A program made the translations under genes and the position numbers. Positions 661-36,804 of a stretch of 64,000 nucleotides of DNA are shown here, in pieces; the stretch's first letter is position 1; every line of letters begins with the position of its first letter. Location of the stretch: sequence record PQ657772.1, one strand, 5' to 3'. Below the pieces are notes generated by a model. The model saw only the letters and a list, made by a program, of their open reading frames with translations, was not told where the DNA came from and did not search any database.

Positions 661-750
661 TTTGTTTCTCTCTTAGGTTAAGTTAACTACTGTTTATAAA
701 ACTTATTATACAGTACTATCAAACGTTGTCAATAGTACTGGTAATATATT

Positions 751-930
751 TTAGCGGTAGTCGTCGTATGCTTTATTCACCTGGCGAATGTAACTTTCAA
801 AGGCTTCGTCTACCGTTTCATACTCCCGAACATAATCACCATAGGAAACTACATACATACCTTTTTGATCTTCAAACGTCATGATGATAGAATCCAGACC
901 AACGATTTCAGTTTTTGCGATGATAGCCAT
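751..930 (-). CDS. early hypothetical protein (59 aa, MAIIAKTEIV...)
   Basis: hand-translated; AAGGA RBS; own promoter 966-994. Confidence 0.75.
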   Translation of the reverse strand: MAIIAKTEIVGLDSIIMTFEDQKGMYVVSYGDYVREYETVDEAFESYIRQVNKAYDDYR

Positions 931-954
931 TTTTTAATTCCTTAGTAGTGTAGT

Positions 955-1016
955 TGATAAAAGTTATTATGTCAGTACTATCAAACTATGTCAATAGTAC
1001 TGTGATAATATTTTTA
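955..1016 (-). promoter_or_regulatory. sigma70 promoter cassette, duplicated at 4349-4410
   Basis: TTGACA-17-CATAAT; 62 bp with 1 mismatch to 4349-4410. Confidence 0.8.
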
Positions 1017-1226
1017 GTTAATGATAGTCAGTGTAAAATTGTAATCACCGCAGCGATATAGCACGTTATTCCCAAATGTCCCAACTAATCGCACATCACA
1101 CAAAACGCCGGTTTTTTCTTTTACTTCCTTGATACTTGTAACTCCTGTAATATCTTTATTAAAGTATTCATGATCTGAAAATAAAACTTGTTTTGCATTT
1201 TTTAATTTCGACCGGATATTAGCCAT
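1014..1226 (-). CDS. early hypothetical protein
   Basis: ORF with RBS behind promoter 1281-1308. Confidence 0.8.
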   Translation of the reverse strand: MANIRSKLKNAKQVLFSDHEYFNKDITGVTSIKEVKEKTGVLCDVRLVGTFGNNVLYRCGDYNFTLTIIN

Positions 1227-1247
1227 TTTGTTTTCTCTCTCTGTTAG

Positions 1248-1308
1248 TGGGGAGAAGTTTTTCTCCCCTTGATGTAAACTATTATACAGTACTATAATCT
1301 ATTGTCAA
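1248..1308 (-). promoter_or_regulatory. early promoter plus 5' stem-loop cassette
   Basis: TTGACA-16-TATAAT, then GGGGAGAA-AAC-TTCTCCCC hairpin at transcript start. Confidence 0.8.
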
Positions 1309-1322
1309 ACTATTTTTTTATA

Positions 1323-1664
1323 TTATTCGAAATCTTCTGGACCGGACTGATAATCATCTTCACCGTATGCACTTTCTAACCGCTCGCCAGTGTGATCATC
1401 AGTTAGTGAGTCATCCTCATAGTTCACGTCTACGCCAGTGATGTAAAACTGGCTATCGTCTGGATCATTGAAATTAATTTTTTGGATGTTTACAATAACT
1501 GTATTGATACCCAGGACACCGCCATCAGCCGTTACAAAGTACTGATATTTTTCACAACCGCCTGAATTGAAACCGTAATTAATTTCAGCCCGACCATCAT
1601 TTAAACGCAGTGCCTGGGCGATGATTTCATTTTCAAAGTTAGATTGAGCAATTGAGATAGTCAT
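1323..1664 (-). CDS. acidic early hypothetical protein
   Basis: ORF, RBS, promoter 1716-1743; D/E-rich C-terminus. Confidence 0.8.
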   Translation of the reverse strand: MTISIAQSNFENEIIAQALRLNDGRAEINYGFNSGGCEKYQYFVTADGGVLGINTVIVNIQKINFNDPDDSQFYITGVDVNYEDDSLTDDHTGERLESAYGEDDYQSGPEDFE

Positions 1665-1746
1665 GATTTGTTTCCTTATTACCAGGGGAAACCGTTTCCC
1701 CTTTCGATGTAAAACATTATACGCTTATCAGGAAGTAATGCAAGTA

Positions 1747-2214
1747 CTATTTCACGTTAATTTCAAAGTACTGCTCTTTGATGTTTTCCTGTTGGTAAAT
1801 CTCGTTTAATGCTTTAAGATCTAAAACCTGTTTACCTGCTGCCTGAATATACTTTTTAAGAGTCGCTAACAGCTTCTCAGGCGTGTTTGTAGTCTTACGT
1901 GTTGGGATCTTATCGTGCCCCATAGCGTAGTACTGCTTACGTGCTATAGTACTGATAACACTGCGGTACGGTTCCATGATCAGCTTGTCTGTGTATTCGT
2001 CGCTATCCCCAAACTTCATACCGTGGATCGCAAAGGTCATCATCATGCGGTCGTTATCGCGGATATTGTGGGGGCAGTCGGCAAGCTCGCGAGTCAGTGA
2101 CATAGTGATCCCCACGTCGCCACCCAGCGGTAAAGGTCGGGCGATAAAGAAACCGTTAGGGAATACTTTCAGGAAGTTTTCTTGAACTGCTGCGACGAAT
2201 TCGATGCTATTCAT
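1747..2214 (-). CDS. early hypothetical protein
   Basis: 155-aa ORF, AAGGA RBS, promoter 2267-2294. Confidence 0.85.
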   Translation of the reverse strand: MNSIEFVAAVQENFLKVFPNGFFIARPLPLGGDVGITMSLTRELADCPHNIRDNDRMMMTFAIHGMKFGDSDEYTDKLIMEPYRSVISTIARKQYYAMGHDKIPTRKTTNTPEKLLATLKKYIQAAGKQVLDLKALNEIYQQENIKEQYFEINVK

Positions 2215-2349
2215 AATTCATTTCCTTAATTAGTGGGGTAAGTTGTTTCCCCTCTCGATGTAAAACATTATACGCTTATTGAGATAGTTTGCAAGTACTT
2301 TTTAAAAATAGTTTTCAGTACTCAATACTCATATAATAGATACACTTAT

Positions 2350-2416
2350 GCACCCTGTGGGCTAGTGAGCTATCTCTCAATGAATATATAATAGCAAAAT
2401 GGCTGACCGGAGTCAA
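2350..2416 (-). ncRNA. promoter-driven ORF-less two-hairpin element, copy B
   Basis: TTGACT-17-TATTAT, then GAGATAGCTC-ACTAG-CCCACAGGGTGC. Confidence 0.5.
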
Positions 2417-2425
2417 CCACTTTTT

Positions 2426-2569
2426 TCATTTATTTTTAGCTTTTAGAATCGCCGCCTTTCGCGTCATGCCTTGCTTGATGTATTCTTGTACTTTCGCTTT
2501 ACGTGCATTCGCTTTATTTGCTTTCGTAAATGCCGAACAACTTTTATAGTTTAAACCTGTTGGATTCAT
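2426..2569 (-). CDS. basic hypothetical protein (47 aa)
   Basis: hand-translated MNPTGLNYK...KAKNK; abuts upstream stop. Confidence 0.65.
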   Translation of the reverse strand: MNPTGLNYKSCSAFTKANKANARKAKVQEYIKQGMTRKAAILKAKNK

Positions 2570-2659
2570 TTAAATCACCATAAAGAATAGATAGGTTACT
2601 AACAACGCCGCGATCAATGCACCGACCAGGGCCGAACTATAGTAAGCTAATGTTTTCAT
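2570..2659 (-). CDS. 29-aa single-TM peptide
   Basis: hand-translated MKTLAYYSSALVGALIAALLVTYLFFMVI; ATGA overlap. Confidence 0.6.
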   Translation of the reverse strand: MKTLAYYSSALVGALIAALLVTYLFFMVI

Positions 2660-2808
2660 TTTTTAGCCTGAAAGTAATGTTTAATTTGAGCGGCGGTCAG
2701 TGCACAATTACGCAGGAAGTTTTCTGTATAACTTTTGCGAGTACTGAAAGAGAATTGACCTTTGCCGTTACCGATAGTAACATCAAACCGAGCGTTGTAT
2801 TGTTTCAT
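2656..2808 (-). CDS. early hypothetical protein
   Basis: start moved to MKQYN (AGGAG RBS); promoter 2859-2886. Confidence 0.75.
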   Translation of the reverse strand: MKQYNARFDVTIGNGKGQFSFSTRKSYTENFLRNCALTAAQIKHYFQAKK

Positions 2809-2889
2809 TTTGATTCTCCTGTTATTGGGGAGAATCATTTCTCCCCTTCATGTAAAACATTATACAGTACTAAAAACTAATTGCAAGTA

Positions 2890-3036
2890 CTATTTTTTAG
2901 ATTTACGCAAACTTTCTACCATCTCAGGAGTAAGGCCCGGCGGGTAGGAAACTACTTCATCAACGAAACGTAAAGGGAATACCCCATCTAAGGTTGAACG
3001 TGCTTTCTTAGTATTACTCTTTTTTGATGCTTTCAT
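2890..3036 (-). CDS. early hypothetical protein (48 aa)
   Basis: hand-translated MKASKKSNTK...; AAGGA RBS; promoter 3088-3115. Confidence 0.65.
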   Translation of the reverse strand: MKASKKSNTKKARSTLDGVFPLRFVDEVVSYPPGLTPEMVESLRKSKK

Positions 3037-3105
3037 TTCATATTCCTTAATTAGTGGGGAGAATCATTTCTCCCCTTCATGTAAAACATTATACGCGTTT
3101 AAAAA

Positions 3106-3315
3106 CTAATTGCAAGTACTATTTGAAAGTAAATGCTCATACGCTACATTAACTACGTTTTCAATAACCGACTGTACAGAAAGATCCCCCACGTCCTGGC
3201 TATAGTAGAAATCGCTTACAGTACTGTCATCGTATGCAAATACTTTACCAGGTACTGCATCAATCACATACATATTAACCTTTAAGATGTCGATCTTATC
3301 CTGTACAGTAAGCAT
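3106..3315 (-). CDS. hypothetical protein
   Basis: ORF directly downstream of 3321-3593. Confidence 0.65.
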   Translation of the reverse strand: MLTVQDKIDILKVNMYVIDAVPGKVFAYDDSTVSDFYYSQDVGDLSVQSVIENVVNVAYEHLLSNSTCN

Positions 3316-3320
3316 ATTAA

Positions 3321-3593
3321 TTAACCTTTTAAGTACTGGCTTAAGTAGTCTTGTTGATCTTCGGTGATTGCAGCCATCTTCCCTAGTACTGGATTGATGA
3401 TATAATCCCCTGTAACGTCCTGTAACGCATTCTCAGGCGGTTTAACGGCTGGGGTAGCCATAGCCATTGCCTGGACTTGTTCGACGCTATAACGCTCATA
3501 TAGGCGGCATTCTTCCGGTGTTAACATAGCATCAATGCGTTTCATTGGTTTAATGATGCTTTCGATCTCATTCAGTACTTGATTAACGTTCAT
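3321..3593 (-). CDS. hypothetical protein containing a translated dispersed repeat
   Basis: GGGGA RBS; 3414-3433 matches intergenic repeat 417-436. Confidence 0.7.
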   Translation of the reverse strand: MNVNQVLNEIESIIKPMKRIDAMLTPEECRLYERYSVEQVQAMAMATPAVKPPENALQDVTGDYIINPVLGKMAAITEDQQDYLSQYLKG

Positions 3594-3644
3594 GGTATAA
3601 TCCCCAATATAAGCGGCCTAAATCGACCGCTAACGATGTTTTGA

Positions 3645-3914
3645 TTAATAGGTGTATGGTTGACGTTCAAACAATGATTGCACGTTGTACGCCCCGCTTA
3701 TGGGCTTTGCTGGTAAATCAATTTTATATTGTTCACGCTTAAAGATAATAAAACGGCAATTGTTTTTAACATCAAAATTGATTGAACGTTCCAGGAGTTT
3801 ACCATCGTGCACAAATACAAGATAACCGCTCGCTACTTGTTTTGTAGTACTGGTTGCAACCATAGACCGCCGAACATGTGTACCTGCGTCGATTAAAGTA
3901 CTGATATTTTTCAT
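3645..3914 (-). CDS. early hypothetical protein
   Basis: GAGGA RBS; promoter 3961-3989. Confidence 0.75.
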   Translation of the reverse strand: MKNISTLIDAGTHVRRSMVATSTTKQVASGYLVFVHDGKLLERSINFDVKNNCRFIIFKREQYKIDLPAKPISGAYNVQSLFERQPYTY

Positions 3915-3994
3915 TATACGTTCCTCTTAAGTTAATTTAATTTCTTTCCCCTATGCAGACACTATATCAAAGTATCTGCATAAAGTAAAGCTAA

Positions 3995-4318
3995 TTAAAG
4001 ATCTTTTTTGCGTTTAACATTCTGTACAGTACAATGCAACGGGATATTAAGATCATTGCACAAACGAGTAAGGGAGGTTTCATCAGTATTAAGCCCGTCT
4101 ACTGATTCCTTTAAGAGATCTAACGCCGTTTGTTGATATGCATCTTCATAGCCATAAGTAAATGATTCAACCGCCAGATCATTCAAACCGTTATCCAGTT
4201 CGACGCTTACATGACAAGAATGATAAGTATTGCCATATGAATCAGTCCAACGTTTACCGTCAACATTGATTGCACGGATTGCAGCCAGGGAAACGGTGTT
4301 AATGATAGTTTTAGCCAT
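3995..4318 (-). CDS. early hypothetical protein
   Basis: AAGGA RBS; promoter 4360-4388. Confidence 0.8.
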   Translation of the reverse strand: MAKTIINTVSLAAIRAINVDGKRWTDSYGNTYHSCHVSVELDNGLNDLAVESFTYGYEDAYQQTALDLLKESVDGLNTDETSLTRLCNDLNIPLHCTVQNVKRKKDL

Positions 4319-4407
4319 TTTAGTATTCCTTAAATTAATATGTTGTCTTGATAAAAGTTATTATGCCAGTACTATCAAACTATGTCAATAGTACTGTGAT
4401 AATATTT

Positions 4408-4551
4408 TTACTTACTTTTTGCTTTCTTGATTGCTTCCACCTGGTCGGCCCATTCTTTACCCCATACTTGTAAATTATAATGGTACTGGCAAAGAGCAAC
4501 GCCCCGCTTTAAACCCGTAATAGATTTCTGACCACATTGACAAGTTTTCAT
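4408..4551 (-). CDS. 47-aa protein with CxC...CxxH (possible Zn-binding)
   Basis: hand-translated MKTCQCGQK...LCQYHY; AAGGA RBS; promoter 4602-4629. Confidence 0.7.
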   Translation of the reverse strand: MKTCQCGQKSITGLKRGVALCQYHYNLQVWGKEWADQVEAIKKAKSK

Positions 4552-4637
4552 TTTAGTTTCCTTGTAGTGGGGAGAACCATTTTCTCCCCTTGATGTAATG
4601 TATTATACTTTATTCGATTTACTTTGCAAGTACTTTT

Positions 4638-4865
4638 TTAATTTAATTCATCAAGGCAAAGGATACGCTCAACGCCCAAATCAGTTAAACTAATCGACGG
4701 CACTTGATAGGTTTCAATGTATGCTACACTTGCCCACTGACCGAACTCATTAACGGCCCAGGTATTCATTGCATTTTGCAATTCCGCACCTTCCTTGTTG
4801 GTAATGACTGCAACTACTTGTTCGTTGCCAGTAGTACCAGATACGCGAGTAATGATAATAGCCAT
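4638..4865 (-). CDS. early hypothetical protein
   Basis: start moved to MAIIITR (AAGGA RBS); promoter 4921-4948. Confidence 0.75.
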   Translation of the reverse strand: MAIIITRVSGTTGNEQVVAVITNKEGAELQNAMNTWAVNEFGQWASVAYIETYQVPSISLTDLGVERILCLDELN

Positions 4866-4974
4866 TGTTTTGATTCCTTTGATTTGGAAGGAGAACCGTT
4901 TCCCCCTCTCGATGTAAAACATTATACGCTAATCTCTTAATCGTGCAAGTACTTTTTATTACTTTTTGCAAAAT

Positions 4975-5075
4975 ACTTTAAACGCTCTCAATCGCGTTCT
5001 TACAGCCTTAACGCCACCAGCTAGGGCAATGCATCAGATAATCAGTTTAATGCGTTAGAATCGTTTCTAGGCGGT
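4975..5075. repeat. dispersed ATTCTAACGCATTAA-core repeat
   Basis: 5047-5061 is the reverse complement of 10207-10221. Confidence 0.6.
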
Positions 5076-5102
5076 GCTGGTGGCCTGGTAAACGATAAAC
5101 AC

Positions 5103-5132
5103 AAAAAAGCCCACCGTTTAAGGTGGGCTAGT
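5103..5132. terminator. intrinsic terminator-like hairpin
   Basis: AAAAAAGCCCACC-GTTTAA-GGTGGGCT. Confidence 0.7.
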
Positions 5133-5150
5133 GATTCAGTACTTTAATTG

Positions 5151-5633
5151 TTATGCTTCAACTTTGCGATGAGATTCGATCCATTCCTCGCGAGTCATAC
5201 CGCTGGCGTTAATCGCGTCCAGTACTACCGCAATGCAGTTACCACGCACCGGAATCAGATATTCTTCCCCGTTGTCCAGTACTACCGCTACGCGTTCCTG
5301 AATCCATTTTTTGGCTTTTACTTCTGGCTTGTCTTCCCCATACTTAACCGCCAGGGCTTTTTGTGCCATCTCTGTAACTACTTCCAGATCCAATCCAACT
5401 ACTGCCGCCTGAATACTTTCGATTGTTGCTTGTAGTTCTGCTTCACGGGCCGCCTTTGCCGCTTCAATTTCTGCCGCTTTATTTGCTTGTAGTTCTTTCG
5501 CAGTACTGTACGCGATGTTAAAATTATTGCGTACCGCTTTCATGGTATCGTTATCCAGTTCAGCCAGGATCTCAGCCGCGACGTTAGTTTCATTTGCTAC
5601 CAGTGCTTTGATGAATGATTTTACATTAGCCAT
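5151..5633 (-). CDS. divergent H-NS-like protein
   Basis: coiled-coil N-half; C-terminal KAKK..VLDNGEE..RGNCIAVVLDAINASGMTREEWI parallels H-NS [34 protein letters not shown] (H-NS sequence recalled from memory). Confidence 0.6.
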   Translation of the reverse strand: MANVKSFIKALVANETNVAAEILAELDNDTMKAVRNNFNIAYSTAKELQANKAAEIEAAKAAREAELQATIESIQAAVVGLDLEVVTEMAQKALAVKYGEDKPEVKAKKWIQERVAVVLDNGEEYLIPVRGNCIAVVLDAINASGMTREEWIESHRKVEA

Positions 5634-5697
5634 TTTATAAATCCTCAATTAAAGTTTAGTTTACGTTTATTAGTGTATCAAAGTTTTCTCGACGTGT

Positions 5698-5732
5698 CCA
5701 GTTTTTCGTTCGACTTACTGGCGGTCTACTTA
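5698..5732 (-). promoter_or_regulatory. conserved 5'-leader RNA motif, copy 1
   Basis: TAAGTAG..CCAGT-AAGnnnnACGAAAA-ACTGG; stem covaries with 8235-8269. Confidence 0.55.
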
Positions 5733-5837
5733 GTGCTCCCCGTCTTGATGTAATACATTCTACGCTTTTCTGCGGTAATGTCAACTACTTTCTTAAAACT
5801 ATTTTCAAAGTATCTCAGTACTACGATACTACAAAAA

Positions 5838-5862
5838 CAAAAAAGCCCACCAGGTGGGCTAT
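5838..5862. terminator. intrinsic terminator-like hairpin
   Basis: AAAAAAGCCCACCAGGTGGGCT. Confidence 0.7.
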
Positions 5863-5866
5863 GTAC

Positions 5867-6097
5867 TTAATCAGTGAGTAAAATATTAAACACTTTACCA
5901 TTTAACGTTATTGGTGCACTGCTACCAGGCACAAGATCCGTTAGTATACCTGCAATCGCTTTATCATTGGCTACCTTTCCAGTGTCCAACAGAACTACAG
6001 TACTGATAAGATTAACGCTCGTTTCAATATCATAATGCACGGCGTTAAGTAGTTGTGTAGTACTGCTTTCGTTAAGTAAAACAATTCGCTTAGTCAT
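5867..6097 (-). CDS. hypothetical protein
   Basis: ORF with GGGG RBS. Confidence 0.75.
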   Translation of the reverse strand: MTKRIVLLNESSTTQLLNAVHYDIETSVNLISTVVLLDTGKVANDKAIAGILTDLVPGSSAPITLNGKVFNILLTD

Positions 6098-6118
6098 GAT
6101 GTTACCCCGTAGTATCTA

Positions 6119-6418
6119 TCAACGGCAATTAATAACGCCGGTATGAGTTACTTTCTCGGTATCCATAACAGTGACCGAACCGCGTTTAGTACTGGCATCA
6201 TAATAAATTGTTGTGCTACCGTTTTCGTCTTCTTCATGGAACGGGCCGTTTTTAAATGCTTCCGGCTGGATCTCTAAATCCTTTAATACAATCTCGCCAG
6301 TTCTTTCATCGGTCATTGCAACAGTGCACTGAATGAATTTTTCACTACTTACATCTAATGACGCATTAACAGCGAAAGAGGAAACAGATAAAGCCAGGGC
6401 GATGATTGCAATTTTCAT
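6119..6418 (-). CDS. exported (signal-peptide) two-Cys protein
   Basis: MKIAIIALALSVSSFAVNA leader; Cys near both ends; promoter 6469-6496. Confidence 0.8.
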   Translation of the reverse strand: MKIAIIALALSVSSFAVNASLDVSSEKFIQCTVAMTDERTGEIVLKDLEIQPEAFKNGPFHEEDENGSTTIYYDASTKRGSVTVMDTEKVTHTGVINCR

Positions 6419-6501
6419 TTGATTATCCTTAGTTACCAGGGGGAACCGCTCCCCTTGCGATGTAAAATATTATACAGTACTAAAAACTATTATCAAGTAC
6501 T

Positions 6502-6738
6502 TTATGATTTTTTATAAAACATTTCAGCCGTGATATTTTTACCCGTTGGTTGTACTTTATCCAGAATTTTTTGATGCCCAGGCCGTCCAAATGAATATGA
6601 TCCGTAAACCGTAAACCAGTAGTTACCCTCAGTGTTTACATGTACAGCACAATAGGGTACACCCCGCGATTCATCACTAGTAAAGTGTACTACCGTTCCC
6701 GTTACATTCGCAGACGTTGATTTGATTTGTTCAAGCAT
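6502..6738 (-). CDS. early hypothetical protein
   Basis: AAGGA RBS; promoter 6786-6813. Confidence 0.8.
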   Translation of the reverse strand: MLEQIKSTSANVTGTVVHFTSDESRGVPYCAVHVNTEGNYWFTVYGSYSFGRPGHQKILDKVQPTGKNITAEMFYKKS

Positions 6739-6846
6739 TTTATTATTCCTTAGTTACCAGGGGAACCGCTCCCCCTATGCAAAACATTATACGCGTTTAA
6801 AAACTAATAGCAAGTATTTTAATAAAAAGTATTTGAAAAATAGTTG

Positions 6847-6930
6847 TTGACAAGTGCATCCAGTACTGGCATAATTATTACATCAAGACGAAACAGTCAC
6901 TAACCCACCGGGTGCCGAGATCCGTCTATT
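6847..6930 (+). ncRNA. promoter-driven ORF-less two-hairpin element, copy C
   Basis: TTGACA-17-CATAAT, then CATCAAGACGAAACAGTCACTAACCCACCGGGTGC; runs into hairpin at ~6957-6977. Confidence 0.55.
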
Positions 6931-6981
6931 AAATGATTCAGTACTGAAAAAGTAACGGGGAGTTATTATCTCCCCGCGTTG

Positions 6982-7203
6982 TTATTTTGTAAGGTATAAA
7001 CAGAAGTCACCTTTATTTGCTACGCCGCCAGTGTAACGCGAGGAATAGTTAGAAACGTCCTGGACTTCTGCTATTACCAGGGTATCATCATTCAATTCGT
7101 CGCAGAAGCAAACGGCTGGATCTTGTACGCCGATTTTGTCGGCATGTTCCCGCATAGATTTAACCAGTGCTTCCAGTTGGGAAAGAGTAGTGATATTAGC
7201 CAT
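6982..7203 (-). CDS. early hypothetical protein
   Basis: start moved to MANIT (GAGGA RBS); promoter 7254-7281. Confidence 0.8.
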   Translation of the reverse strand: MANITTLSQLEALVKSMREHADKIGVQDPAVCFCDELNDDTLVIAEVQDVSNYSSRYTGGVANKGDFCLYLTK

Positions 7204-7291
7204 TTTATTTTCCTCATTACCAGGGAGAACCATTTCTCCCTTTGATGTAAACCATTATACAGTACTGAAAACTAATTGCAAGTACTTTCTA

Positions 7292-7456
7292 TTATTTTTT
7301 TAGATCTTCCAGTACTTCTGCGATAGCATCACAAAAATTATTAATTACATCAGGGTGAATGTCAACATTGTCAAATAAACCGCTTTCAGTTGCATCCCGC
7401 AAAGCATCAGACAATACATCCAGGGCGTTCAATTGAGCGAAGGTAAAAGTATTCAT
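7292..7456 (-). CDS. acidic early hypothetical protein (54 aa)
   Basis: hand-translated MNTFTFAQLN...; GAGGA RBS; promoter 7509-7536. Confidence 0.75.
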   Translation of the reverse strand: MNTFTFAQLNALDVLSDALRDATESGLFDNVDIHPDVINNFCDAIAEVLEDLKK

Positions 7457-7548
7457 TTGTAGTATTCCTCATTAGTAGCTGGAACTATTCCCGCTCTCGA
7501 TATAAAGTATTATACGCTTTTAAACTTAGTTTGCAAGTACTTTTTAAA

Positions 7549-8160
7549 TTAATATTCGATTGATTCCACTACGCCATCAATAACATTGAATTGATACTCG
7601 TTACCCTCAATCAGTGCCGTAATGTTTTCAGTAGTGAATTGATCCTCATATGCATTCTCTAAATCACGGTACAACTTGCGGGACAATTCACGAATAGTTT
7701 CAGTGAGTAGTTCCTCAAGCTCATTAACTAACGTTTCTTGTTTTGCGGTTAAATCAGTGTAAGCCGATTCAATGTACCCGCTTACAGTATTCTCATGCGA
7801 GTAGTGGGAGTGCGAACGTTTTACACTCATCGCCAAATCATCTTCATTCAGCAAGTGACGGATTGAGCGATACTTAGTTAATGCTCTTACCTTGCGTAAA
7901 AACTTCACTGCGTCAACGTGGTCAGTACTGATTGATGCACCGTCACCCTGGGACCAAAAACCACTGAATTGTATTTCAGCGTCATTAATGCCATATTCCG
8001 GTAGTACTGTTTCTTTATAGTATTCAATTTCACTTTCAGAAAAATAATTGTCGTTTGAGTTTTTTTCACGTTCCCGAACCAGTTCGATAGCTGACGTTTT
8101 TTGTTCTGCGTTCAATTCAGAAAAATCCATAACGAAAGTAGTAGTAGTGATAGTTTTCAT
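7549..8160 (-). CDS. hypothetical protein with FSGFWSQGDGA motif
   Basis: 203-aa ORF; GAGGG RBS; promoter 8193-8220. Confidence 0.85.
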   Translation of the reverse strand: MKTITTTTFVMDFSELNAEQKTSAIELVREREKNSNDNYFSESEIEYYKETVLPEYGINDAEIQFSGFWSQGDGASISTDHVDAVKFLRKVRALTKYRSIRHLLNEDDLAMSVKRSHSHYSHENTVSGYIESAYTDLTAKQETLVNELEELLTETIRELSRKLYRDLENAYEDQFTTENITALIEGNEYQFNVIDGVVESIEY

Positions 8161-8234
8161 TTTGTAACCCTCATTCAGTAGTTTATGTAAGTATTATACG
8201 CTTTTAAAAACAATTGTCAAACTATTTTATCAGG

Positions 8235-8269
8235 GGAGTTTTTCGTGTGCCTTACTCCTGGGCTACTTA
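8235..8269 (-). promoter_or_regulatory. conserved 5'-leader RNA motif, copy 2
   Basis: TAAGTAG..GGAGT-AAGnnnnACGAAAA-ACTCC, downstream of promoter 8311-8338. Confidence 0.55.
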
Positions 8270-8384
8270 ACGGGAAGTTACTTATTTCGTTCCCCGTCCT
8301 GATGTAAAACATTATACGCCTTTAAACATAGTTTGCAAGTACTTTTTAAAAATAGTTTTCAGTACTGAATAGTAAAAAAAAGTA

Positions 8385-8460
8385 TTGACAGCATTATCAA
8401 GTACTGGTATAATATACCCCATGACAACAGCTAACCCACCGGGTGCACAATTGTAACTAT
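8385..8460 (+). ncRNA. promoter-driven ORF-less element, copy D
   Basis: TTGACA-17-TATAAT, then ...CTAACCCACCGGGTGCACAATTGTAACTATA (3' extension shared with copy A). Confidence 0.5.
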
Positions 8461-8480
8461 ACTAAACTAATTTTTCTATA

Positions 8481-8557
8481 GATACACTCCCGCACCCTAT
8501 GGGCTACGGCTTATCTGCCAATGAATACATTATGCCAGTACTGACAAAATAAGTCAA
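8481..8557 (-). ncRNA. promoter-driven ORF-less element, copy E (convergent with D)
   Basis: TTGACT-17-CATAAT, then GGCAGATAAGCC-GTAG-CCCATAGGGTGCGGGAGTGTATC. Confidence 0.5.
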
Positions 8558-8587
8558 TACCGGCAATTGTAAAGATTTGTAAACTGC

Positions 8588-8824
8588 TTATACTGCAATC
8601 GCGTCCAGGCTATAATAATAATAAGTGCCGTATTGGTGTACTTTATTACCTTTTATTTCAGTACTGAATGAATCCGAACGGTTTGCATATGATGTTAATT
8701 TAAAGTACTTTGATTTGCTGATACGTTGCCATACACCACAGATCCGCTGTAAGTAAGTAGTTTTATTCGTGGTAGTATCTTTTACGGTTTTAACTTCAGT
8801 CATATACATATTAGTCATTTTCAT
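8588..8824 (-). CDS. early hypothetical protein
   Basis: GGAG RBS; promoter 8871-8898. Confidence 0.8.
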   Translation of the reverse strand: MKMTNMYMTEVKTVKDTTTNKTTYLQRICGVWQRISKSKYFKLTSYANRSDSFSTEIKGNKVHQYGTYYYYSLDAIAV

Positions 8825-8905
8825 TACTCCAGGTTATAGGCGGGAAGAGTTCCCGCTCTCGATGTAAAACATTATACGCCTTTAAACATAGTTTGCAAGT
8901 ACTTT

Positions 8906-9172
8906 TTATTCAAGTACTGCAATCTTTTTAGTACGGTACACGGTCACGCGGTTGCCCTTTCGGTCGAGCTTTATTTCTACCACTCGACGCGATACACTAT
9001 CGGGACTTTTTAAGGCCGCTAACCAGTACTGTAATGATCTGGCGGTACTACGCTTTACAATGGCCCAACGTTCACCACTTGCCGATCCCGCTCCCATATC
9101 TTTAAACGTTGCCCCGTCCTGGCGTGCGGCGATCCGAGCTTGTTCACGCGTCGCAAAATACTTAATATTCAT
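8906..9172 (-). CDS. basic hypothetical protein
   Basis: start moved to MNIKY (AGGG RBS). Confidence 0.75.
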   Translation of the reverse strand: MNIKYFATREQARIAARQDGATFKDMGAGSASGERWAIVKRSTARSLQYWLAALKSPDSVSRRVVEIKLDRKGNRVTVYRTKKIAVLE

Positions 9173-9258
9173 GCTGTTGCCCTTATCGTTGGTGTATGAA
9201 TAAAACACTATTATAAAGTACTATCGCAAAAAAATGATAGTACTTTAAATAAATTCTA

Positions 9259-9498
9259 TTACATTCCAACCATCGCCGCACGGATCGCAGTAGTGCTATA
9301 TTTGAATCCGTCCGGTGTTTTATCTTGTCCAGTCTGTTCTAAAAATAACATCATATGACGGGCCGCATCATTGCGATTAGTGTTGTCGTTAATAAAATCC
9401 AGGGCCAACCGATACAATCCCTCATCGTTATTAATCCACAGGCTTACATTCCAATGAGTTTTGTTTTTGTGACCTAAGAACATTTTTGATTTAGCCAT
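9259..9498 (-). CDS. hypothetical protein with WNVSLWINNDEGLY motif
   Basis: GAGGA RBS; promoter 9552-9579. Confidence 0.85.
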   Translation of the reverse strand: MAKSKMFLGHKNKTHWNVSLWINNDEGLYRLALDFINDNTNRNDAARHMMLFLEQTGQDKTPDGFKYSTTAIRAAMVGM

Positions 9499-9593
9499 TT
9501 TTTTTTAATCCTCTTATATAGTGGGGAACTATTCCCCACCTGATGTAAAACATTATACGCCATTAAACATAGTTTGCAAGTACTTTATTAAAC

Positions 9594-9956
9594 TTATTTG
9601 TAAATTTTGCCACTGTCAGCCCATACCAGGAAACGAGGCATATTATCCCATGCATCTTGTTTTAAGTTTAAGCCGTGCAATTCCTCAGTTGTTGCCATCC
9701 CTGGTACTGGCTTACTACACACCGCGAAATTTTCGCCCATATACTGATAAACCATCGTCAAATCATTTGAGATCATTATATGGATCATTGAATCCAGCAT
9801 CAAAGTAGCGGCGTATTGTTCACGCTTAAGCGGCAACATTGCAATAAGTTCCCGATAAGCTGCAATGTGAATTTTTACAGTTTCAGCCGGAAGACCTTTC
9901 ATCTCATCGCGGAAGTTTACCAGGTTAAGCATGATTTTATTGATTTGAGTCGCCAT
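9594..9956 (-). CDS. early hypothetical protein
   Basis: start moved to MATQI (GAGAG RBS); promoter 10012-10039. Confidence 0.8.
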   Translation of the reverse strand: MATQINKIMLNLVNFRDEMKGLPAETVKIHIAAYRELIAMLPLKREQYAATLMLDSMIHIMISNDLTMVYQYMGENFAVCSKPVPGMATTEELHGLNLKQDAWDNMPRFLVWADSGKIYK

Positions 9957-11328: not shown

Positions 11329-11801
11329 TAACTTTCTTTCATCTTTCAGTACTGATATTCTTGAGAACTACCCGACTACAAACATCATTATATCCCACAA
11401 ATCATAAACGTCCCAACGTAAATTTCAACTTTCGAAGATCCAACTTTTATTTCATAGGTACTCCAAAATTTTTAGGATCGAGATTTAGGATGGAGTACTA
11501 ACCAACTTTTTGCTGGAGCCTCAAGGGGTAATGGAATTTTACCCCGAAGGGTAAAGGGGTAATTGAAATTAAGGTGAAAGTAATAATTCAGTACTAATCA
11601 TTGCGTGATTACTTTTGATTACATTTGATGTAATTTGCAAAATGGAAAAGGAGCTTGGAAACTACAAAGTACGGCAGACTTCCTCTGCCTACTTAGTGGG
11701 ATATCGCCACCTTCAGTACTGAATACTTTTAGGGCAGTACTGCTACGTTCTTGATTAAACGTGCACATTCCTGTACTCTATTACACTCTGGTACTCAATA
11801 C

Positions 11802-36033: not shown

Positions 36034-36804
36034 TTAAATTTTCTCAAGGAACAAGTTTTCGCACTGCTCTTCCCAATCATACGGGTTGTTGTTGTATACT
36101 GCTGAAATCAACAGAGGCATACGCAGTGAAGGAGCACGAAGTGCATCTTCATGTTTCAGCATCCAATTCAGGATTGCTTTGCTACCATTACTATTAACAC
36201 CTTTAGTTGACAGGATGTTGGTCTTGTTCATTACGTTTTCAATGTGAATCATGATATCGCTTTTAGTCTGGATCTGTAAGTCAACATACACAGAGCGAGA
36301 CATAAGAGCAGCATAGTGAGCAGACATTTTGGTTTTAGCTTTAGCATTCAGTGCTAAATCTTTGTTAGTAATGAATACGATACGACCATTAAAATCAAAG
36401 CTGTTAGGGATACCGTTGGTAGTTAAGTACTTAGAGCTAGTCATGTAAGACACAGTACGTTTACCGCTGTCCAGTACTGCTTTGAGCAGGTTCATACCGT
36501 CTTCTGAATCAAAGATGCTGTCCATATCATCCAGTACTAATACGTTAGTGCTGTGACGATTCTTGTACAGAACTTCATACAGAGCAAGAGTAGTCATCTT
36601 ACCACTGATAGTGGCTACGTTCCATTCTGCTGCGTCATGAGCTTTCTGGAGGCGTTGTGACAGGGTGTAAGTCTTACCAACACCAGGTGCACCGCTGACA
36701 ACCATACTTTTTACAGTACTGCTATCATCGAGCAAACACTCAAGAGCAACCATCATGGAGTTGAAGTTTTTCTGGATTTGAATGCTACGGGCTTCTCTGG
36801 TCAT
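36034..36804 (-). CDS. AAA+ / P-loop ATPase
   Basis: Walker A GAPGVGKT, Walker B VLVLDDMD, sensor-like FITN. Confidence 0.85.
   Translation of the reverse strand: MTREARSIQIQKNFNSMMVALECLLDDSSTVKSMVVSGAPGVGKTYTLSQRLQKAHDAAEWNVATISGKMTTLALYEVLYKNRHSTNVLVLDDMDSIFDSEDGMNLLKAVLDSGKRTVSYMTSSKYLTTNGIPNSFDFNGRIVFITNKDLALNAKAKTKMSAHYAALMSRSVYVDLQIQTKSDIMIHIENVMNKTNILSTKGVNSNGSKAILNWMLKHEDALRAPSLRMPLLISAVYNNNPYDWEEQCENLFLEKI

Follow-up and report, generated by a model that had tools for sequence, protein, structure and literature searches.

A conserved structured RNA domain in two early promoter cassettes of a jumbo coliphage and in the T7 A1 leader

We analysed a stretch of 64,000 nucleotides from sequence record PQ657772.1 (the window), which is the start of the jumbo coliphage EC.P1, and focused on two sites of its minus strand, 5698–5732 (copy A) and 8235–8269 (copy B). 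An earlier note, made from the sequence alone, had described a leader RNA motif with compensatory base changes at these sites. Both sites carry a copy of a conserved, structured RNA domain, approximately 60–85 nt in length, that is transcribed from strong early sigma-70-type promoters. The domain is restricted to Enterobacterales phages plus a few neighbours, and it is common to unrelated phage families. That the element is a real structured RNA is very probable. As to its function, we tentatively favour a portable early non-coding RNA that is the payload of its own promoter cassette and acts on a conserved host factor.

Architecture and covariation of the domain

Both strings given in the earlier note are present exactly at the two sites, each with a 24-nt hairpin. 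The flip of the CC/GG pairs of one stem to GG/CC in the other is real, and the element is an RNA-level element with true compensatory changes. The features of the two copies and their surroundings are as follows.

8311–8338, minus strand: promoter P1 of copy B (TTGCAA, 16-nt spacer, TATAAT), with the inferred start at A 8303
8229–8303, minus strand: RNA domain of copy B, a three-way junction with a closing helix, an upstream hairpin, a junction and hairpin P3
8303–8298 with 8234–8229, minus strand: closing helix of copy B, AUCAGG with CCUGAU
8297–8270, minus strand: upstream hairpin of copy B
8269–8263, minus strand: junction of copy B, UAAGUAG followed by CCCA
8258–8235, minus strand: hairpin P3 of copy B (24 nt), GGAGU/ACUCC, loop AAGGCACACGAAAA
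8193–8220, minus strand: promoter P2, immediately following copy B (TTGACA, 16-nt spacer, TATAAT; 12/12 matches)
7549–8160, minus strand: open reading frame (ORF) of 203 aa downstream of copy B, phrog_5162, function unknown
5757–5784, minus strand: promoter P1 of copy A (TTGACA, 16-nt spacer, TAGAAT), with the inferred start at A 5749
5691–5749, minus strand: RNA domain of copy A, a short form with a closing helix, a junction and hairpin P3
5744–5741 with 5694–5691, minus strand: closing helix of copy A, GACG with CGUC
5732–5726, minus strand: junction of copy A, UAAGUAG followed by ACCG
5721–5698, minus strand: hairpin P3 of copy A (24 nt), CCAGU/ACUGG, loop AAGUCGAACGAAAA
5653–5681, minus strand: second promoter after copy A, weak and probably decayed (TTGATA, 17-nt spacer, TAAACT; 9/12 matches)
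5151–5633, minus strand: ORF of 160 aa downstream of copy A, phrog_27871/20181

The P1 promoters of both copies are strong and close to the sigma-70 consensus, and the element lies just 3' of each. The inferred transcripts both begin with AUCARGACGGGGA, as the earlier note had stated; this start is not specific to the motif, however, since it is partly generic and much of it is common to approximately 15 other early cassettes. An exact match to the gapped pattern of bases shared by the two copies occurs at the two sites only in the 64-kb window, and with three mismatches allowed, four matches were seen versus 0.3 expected by chance. A covariance model likewise detected only two full copies in the 64 kb (E ~1e-12). 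Its sub-threshold matches at 11671–11699 and 36659–36687 are not full copies, and no further copy was found in the window. Contigs from related strains differ from copy B at positions 8247, 8250 and 8262, all of which are variable positions of the element.

Alignment of 24 distinct cores defined the consensus. The block UAAGUAG is invariant and is followed by NCNN, in which the C is invariant, and by a stem of 4–5 bp. The hairpin loop (14–16 nt) consists of (U)AAG, N-C-N-N with an invariant C, and ACGAAAA. The claim that the loop bases are fixed therefore holds for AAG, one C and ACGAAAA, but not for the central four bases as a whole, which are UCGA in one window copy and GCAC in the other. 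The stems seen were CCAG/CUGG, GGAG/CUCC, CCUG/CAGG, CUUG/CAAG, CCUG/CGGG and CAAC/GUUG, with the pair types CG/GC/UA and UA/AU/UG, and none of 500 shuffles reached the observed covariation score. Sliding the stem partners against each other lowered the paired fraction of the hairpin from 89% to 31–48%. The bare hairpins are not unusually stable (z-scores of −0.4 to −1.5); because the folding energy is unremarkable, the support for the element comes from the comparative data. The arms of the helices change yet stay complementary, and the G-U pairs work on the sense strand only, which indicates an RNA and not a duplex DNA site. The invariant unpaired bases are the signature of a binding or tertiary-fold element. 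To this extent the binding element proposed in the earlier note is supported, although that note had caught only about half of the element: the closing helix had escaped it, as had the relatives in T7.

The conserved core is enclosed by a further helix. In Autographiviridae, GUCAA, located a few nucleotides 5' of UAAGUAG, pairs with UUGAC, located 2 nt after the hairpin; in T7, this 3' strand is the RNA copy of the −35 hexamer of promoter A2. The corresponding helices in other lineages are GUCAUC/GAUGAC, GUCAGA/UCUGAC, GUCGGU/ACCGAC, GAUUAG/CUAAUC and GCUAA/UUAGC. Among 30 Autographiviridae sequences, each of the five enclosing-helix pairs shows 3–4 standard pair types with 97–100% pairing. 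The 5' strand of the enclosing helix doubles as the loop of a local upstream hairpin (stems CCGG/CCGG, CCAG/CUGG, CCAC/GUGG and CGGG/CCCG), which covaries too. Over both helices, 91% of the cells are paired, and again no shuffle out of 500 attained the score. A single unpaired base precedes the 5-bp loop helix and none follows it. As judged from these sequences, the geometry of the T7-like form would be compatible with an H-type pseudoknot or with a two-state switch.

In the forms from jumbo phages and Vequintavirinae, the 5' end of the transcript pairs with the segment just after the hairpin. These helices are GACGG/CCGUC in LTH01, AUC..CGG/CCG..GAU in Hallingskeid, CGGC/GCCG in Munch and GCGGC/GUCGC in L008. 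The duplexes beat shuffled controls individually in 7 of 13 lineages, with a combined p of ~4e-5, the lineages being not fully independent. A covariance model built from Autographiviridae only aligned copy A (5684–5757) and LTH01 over their full lengths with the closing helix in register. Munch, L008 and copy B carry an extra hairpin between the closing helix and UAAGUAG, resulting in a three-way junction. The closing helix of the window copies uses transcript nucleotides +1 to +9, and in T7-like phages the domain is internal and starts at approximately +30.

Distribution among phages and genetic setting

Homologues of the element, with covariation in the sets aligned above, were found in T7 and in hundreds of other phage records. 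T7 carries the same core at 551–587, between the annotated promoters A1 (498) and A2 (626) and thus within the A1 "initiator" leader RNA, which extends from A1 to the RNase III site R0.3. As far as we are aware, neither a structured motif nor a function has been attributed to this portion of it. A 61-nt query from T7 matched 485 phage records, mostly of Autographiviridae. The carriers checked for taxonomy include Teseptimavirus (T7), T3, Kayfunavirus, Limelightvirus and Drulisvirus, and the hosts include Escherichia, Klebsiella, Salmonella, Yersinia, Enterobacter, Citrobacter, Pantoea, Erwinia and Serratia. BLAST with the copy A leader retrieved copy A itself in Asteriusvirus records and the core in the T7-like Yersinia phage phiA1122, in phage 13a, in T7-like Escherichia phages, in the jumbo phages Munch, SE_PL, fENko-Kae01 and PHA46, and in Erwinia phage Hallingskeid and LTH01 (Vequintavirinae). 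Copy B occurs at approximately 90% identity in the ~145-kb phages A73, W70, outra and muut, of which A73 is recorded as Vequintavirinae. Pattern scans of IMG/VR and metagenomes yielded further variants; the matches of the loose pattern are mostly due to chance and were filtered by stem complementarity.

The element was confined to phages in our searches of bacteria. The T7 element had no BLAST match in 5,426 E. coli genomes, and a pattern scan of one genome each from 185,579 bacterial species gave four matches, three of them due to chance and one on a T3-like contig binned into a metagenome-assembled genome. A host copy or mimic was therefore rejected, as nothing beyond this phage contig was found in either set. 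Comparison with Rfam 15 gave no family: the window has no gathering-level match, and no match at E up to 10 lies over the element in the window or in T7, K1F, LIMElight, Kpp-9, CY1 and Mak. Full-text searches with strings of the T7 element and by topic returned construct sequences only, with no description or name of the motif.

The position of the element relative to promoters is well maintained. It lies within ~20–75 nt of the start of the upstream-most strong promoter, and in nearly all lineages it is followed by a second complete sigma-70 promoter at distances from 7 nt (T7) to ~52 nt (Munch). The second promoters have no homology between lineages. In the window, the promoter at 8338 drives the element without an ORF of its own, and a perfect second promoter comes next. 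This promoter, P2 (8220–8193), serves the 203-aa gene with a transcript that does not contain the element. The weak promoter at 5653–5681 has intact counterparts at the homologous locus in Munch, Hallingskeid and L008, before homologues of the 160-aa gene.

Several further features were observed near the element in T7-like phages. The A2–A3 interval of T7 (640–720) looks like a decayed duplicate of the A1–A2 element, with UUAAGCGCACC...CAUAAGGUGAAACAAAACGG flanked by GUCAA and UUGAC, the latter being the −35 hexamer of A3. This arrangement suggests that the A1–A3 region may have arisen by tandem duplication of a promoter-plus-RNA unit. The metagenomic T7-like contig L112 (4113–4190) has a canonical boxA (CGCTCTTTAACAA) 24 nt after the element, and T7 itself has, at 780–846, a small hairpin with the loop UAACGAAAC immediately before a boxA. 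The first nucleotides of the A1 transcript of T3-like phages (ACGGGACAACGGC) agree in 12 of 13 bases with those of the E. coli rrnB P1 transcript (ACGGAACAACGGC).

Region 5600–8400 of the window is 100% identical to Escherichia phage EC.P1 (356 kb), a jumbo coliphage of Asteriusvirus, and 93–99% identical to the same region in ~45 Asteriusvirus jumbo phages of the PBECO4/121Q group. The early genes of the region are on the minus strand, and nearly every gene of the jumbo phage has its own promoter. At least 17 near-identical early promoter cassettes are arrayed in this part of the window, with 17 minus-strand promoters within the first 10 kb:

700–9600, minus strand: early cassette promoters, (A)GTACTTGCAA or TTGACA, 16-nt spacer, TATAAT

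Approximately 15 of the early promoters in the first 10 kb are followed within ~50 nt by a simple 5' hairpin, a Shine-Dalgarno (SD) sequence and an ORF, in this order. Their transcripts start with AUC(A/G)AG(G)GG, and the cassette-wide form of the start is ACAUCRAGGGGAG. Only two of the ~17 cassettes carry the element. Contigs from related strains show many cassette-swap joints at promoter/leader regions. This layout, in which an early sigma-70 promoter and a stem-loop flank small ORFs at the joints of module swaps, is that of the PeSL cassettes of T4-type phages. The PeSL stem-loops are reportedly simple terminator or 5' hairpins, whereas the present element has an invariant junction and loop and a covarying enclosing helix or pseudoknot, and it crosses phage families. 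The element is an unusual payload of two PeSL-type early cassettes. Two near-perfect sigma-70 promoters on the plus strand (8385–8413 and 6847–6875; TTGACA, 17-nt spacer, TATAAT or CATAAT, extended TG) oppose the early genes. Each of them lies within a repeated element containing GCACCCGGTGGGTTAG, and they would yield antisense or divergent transcripts.

In jumbo phages the element is located inside the terminal repeat, near the leading end. The left physical end of the Asteriusvirus records CRJP21 and vB_Ec-M-J, which is the start of the direct terminal repeat, corresponds to approximately position 11691 of the window. It falls within CTA followed by AGTAGGCAG..., where TAAGTAG is directly followed by a GGCAG/CUGCC hairpin (11671–11699, minus strand). 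The same segment is the third-best match of the motif model in the window (E = 0.72). The presence of TAAGTAG at the repeat boundary may be a coincidence, or the UAAGUAG block may be linked to terminus formation.

The genes behind the element fall into at least six mutually unrelated groups: phrog_5162, phrog_27871/20181, phrog_13850, phrog_8099, ocr of T7 and a different ORF, which lies at a second 121Q locus. The 203-aa ORF at 7549–8160, which the earlier note had correctly placed behind one of the motifs, begins 69 nt after the end of copy B, with P2 between them; the corresponding distance for copy A is 58–65 nt. The 160-aa product of 5151–5633 had been called H-NS-like, which we could not substantiate. 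It has no sequence match in Pfam or PDB, and Foldseek returned nothing significant (no hit with E below 0.07). The AlphaFold model, weak at pLDDT 64, consists of a long helix followed by a C-terminal beta-beta-alpha-alpha unit, a predicted topology that would be compatible with a small nucleic-acid-binding domain. Munch and Hallingskeid encode longer homologues of this protein (195 and 208 aa), and the element precedes these genes too. At the copy A gene (5633–5670, minus strand) and its Munch homologue (2640–2657), the ribosome-binding regions have the form AACUUUAA..GAGG..AUAUACAAUG, which is close to the leader and enhancer of T7 gene 10.

Possible functions of the domain

Host RNA polymerase transcribes the domain from the early promoters. 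In the explanation that we tentatively prefer, the domain would be the payload of the cassette rather than a regulator of the gene behind it, and it would have moved horizontally between unrelated phages of Enterobacterales. Its invariant unpaired bases would be presented to a conserved host factor at the onset of infection, with the abundant RNA serving as an aptamer, decoy or recruiter. The domain may represent a previously unrecognised class of phage non-coding RNA with a pseudoknot or a closed junction. Such an RNA would be the first to be made in an infection, from the strongest host-type promoter (A1 in the case of T7), and would have passed between three or more phage families. Its target would be a host factor with an essential or defensive role, which it might disarm or recruit as an aptamer. 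We favour this explanation because the domain is portable between phage families with few shared proteins, because the gene behind it normally has a promoter of its own, and because so few of the early cassettes carry it. It is also well established that, in T7, cleavage at R0.3 separates the leader from the mRNAs.

Several points weigh against this explanation. The sequences share descent and have been exchanged by transfer, and they provide a modest number of independent covariation events. Instead of forming a pseudoknot together, the enclosing helix and the upstream hairpin could represent alternative folds. No terminator-like site, which would provide the 3' end of a discrete small RNA, was found after either window copy. 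Copy A and the element of contig L112 run on without a break into the mRNA or a boxA leader, which would allow a role in cis. Finally, the host partner of the element is hypothetical.

The main rival explanation, which we regard as unlikely but serious, is a modifier in cis of the transcribing host RNA polymerase, similar to put, nut or RARE. The nascent domain would stay on or near the polymerase and make it resistant to pausing, Rho or collisions across the untranslated leader and the downstream promoters, which would matter for transcription-driven genome entry. The location of the element agrees with this idea: it is always promoter-proximal, the jumbo-phage copies lie near the leading end in the terminal repeat, and the T7 copy is inside the A1–A3 region, which was called an internalisation signal in a study of T7. 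The arrangement is nut-like, with a linear conserved block separated by a spacer from a hairpin, and the boxA of L112 and the T7 hairpin with the UAACGAAAC loop before boxA point in the same direction. However, the transcripts from A2, A3 and the window promoter P2 do not contain the element and serve the same genes, and read-through is not obviously needed where nearly each gene has its own promoter. The early terminator and Rho sites still end transcripts that are made from T7 A1 in vitro, which argues against factor-independent antitermination.

Comparison with the known systems of this type gave a mixed picture. Like put of phage HK022, the element is a structured phage-borne RNA of ~70 nt located just 3' of early host-polymerase promoters, with no obvious need for a phage protein. 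However, put consists of two stem-loops, whereas the window element forms a closed junction or pseudoknot whose single conserved hairpin is irregular, and it is followed by a second promoter and not by terminators. No put family was matched in the Rfam scans, and no direct sequence or model comparison with it was made. As in lambda nut and in boxB-boxA of the rrn leaders, the promoter-proximal leader carries a linear conserved block and, after a spacer, a hairpin whose loop is A-rich. The boxB of rrnB also has a 5-bp stem and a 14-nt A-rich loop, and in L112 the boxA is part of this likeness. On the other hand, the nut-like site suggested in the earlier note is not supported at the window copies, since no CGCUCUUUA-like boxA with up to two mismatches was found on the minus strand near 5600–8400 and the loop of 14–16 nt differs from the GNRA-like pentaloop of lambda boxB, which is closed by a 5-bp stem and bound by N. 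We know of no N-type protein in T7-like phages. Homology to rrn boxB was rejected because the covariance model (R1) gave only a 7-nt fragment (4 bits) on the rrnB leader.

It is quite improbable that the domain is simply a 5' stabiliser or folding insulator, which would bury the 5' end in a closed domain, block 5'-end-dependent decay and keep the leader off the mRNA. The use of +1 to +9 by the closing helix of the window copies fits such a role, as do the simple 5' hairpins that all the other early cassettes carry at the same place. However, a stabiliser has no need for ~20 invariant unpaired bases kept across phage families, and the internal position of the T7-like domain and the cleavage of the T7 leader at R0.3 are difficult to reconcile with it. 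Moreover, it would not account for the use of the element in only two cassettes.

A ligand-sensing, riboswitch-like aptamer or a two-state switch, which would read a host metabolite or ion early in infection, is very improbable. A closed junction with invariant unpaired bases is what such an RNA would look like, and the two overlapping covarying helices are compatible with alternative folds. However, there is no expression platform: neither a terminator nor SD sequestration lies within reach, the downstream context is variable, and no riboswitch family in Rfam was matched. The aptamer-like closed junction was therefore not taken for a riboswitch.

Scarcely any weight is given to a DNA-level element, such as an UP element, a protein site for the downstream promoter or a packaging/terminus signal, or to a hitch-hiking recombination linker. 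The element lies upstream of a promoter, in T7 an A-run occupies −46 to −38 of A2, cassette-swap joints cluster at the promoter/leader regions of related strains, and TAAGTAG with a hairpin is found at the terminal-repeat boundary. However, the distance to the downstream promoter varies over the range given above, and the arms vary with complementarity kept, including the G-U pairs that exist on the sense strand only. Resemblances to hammerhead, pistol and tmRNA structures and possible mimicry of CRISPR repeats or SD sequences were dropped because the similarity does not involve the conserved bases or because the spacing varies; readings as an IHF site or UP element were dropped on the same grounds.

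The least probable reading is an operator for a phage-encoded protein, either translational or autoregulatory; the former had been proposed in the earlier note. The conserved unpaired bases could serve such a protein, and copy A is kept together with homologues of the 160-aa gene in Munch, Hallingskeid and L008, but the genes behind the element are unrelated in T7, T3, Vequintavirinae and the other 121Q loci, and the element is far from the SD sequence, at 60–100 nt or more from the ribosome-binding sites (the window copies end 58–69 nt before the start codons), usually with a second promoter in between. A protein common to all carrier families is not evident, though no search for one was made.

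The A1–A3 region of T7 is a widely used source of promoters and is regarded as a signal for genome internalisation. The occurrence of a strongly conserved, covarying fold in the T7 A1 leader, in jumbo phages and in Vequintavirinae suggests that these phages take over their enterobacterial hosts by way of an early step not yet recognised. The A1–A2 fragments reused in constructs carry a folded RNA, and the presence of the element in the T7 A1 leader makes it readily testable by T7 genetics. The element is also a portable marker for early-promoter cassettes that are exchanged horizontally among these phages.

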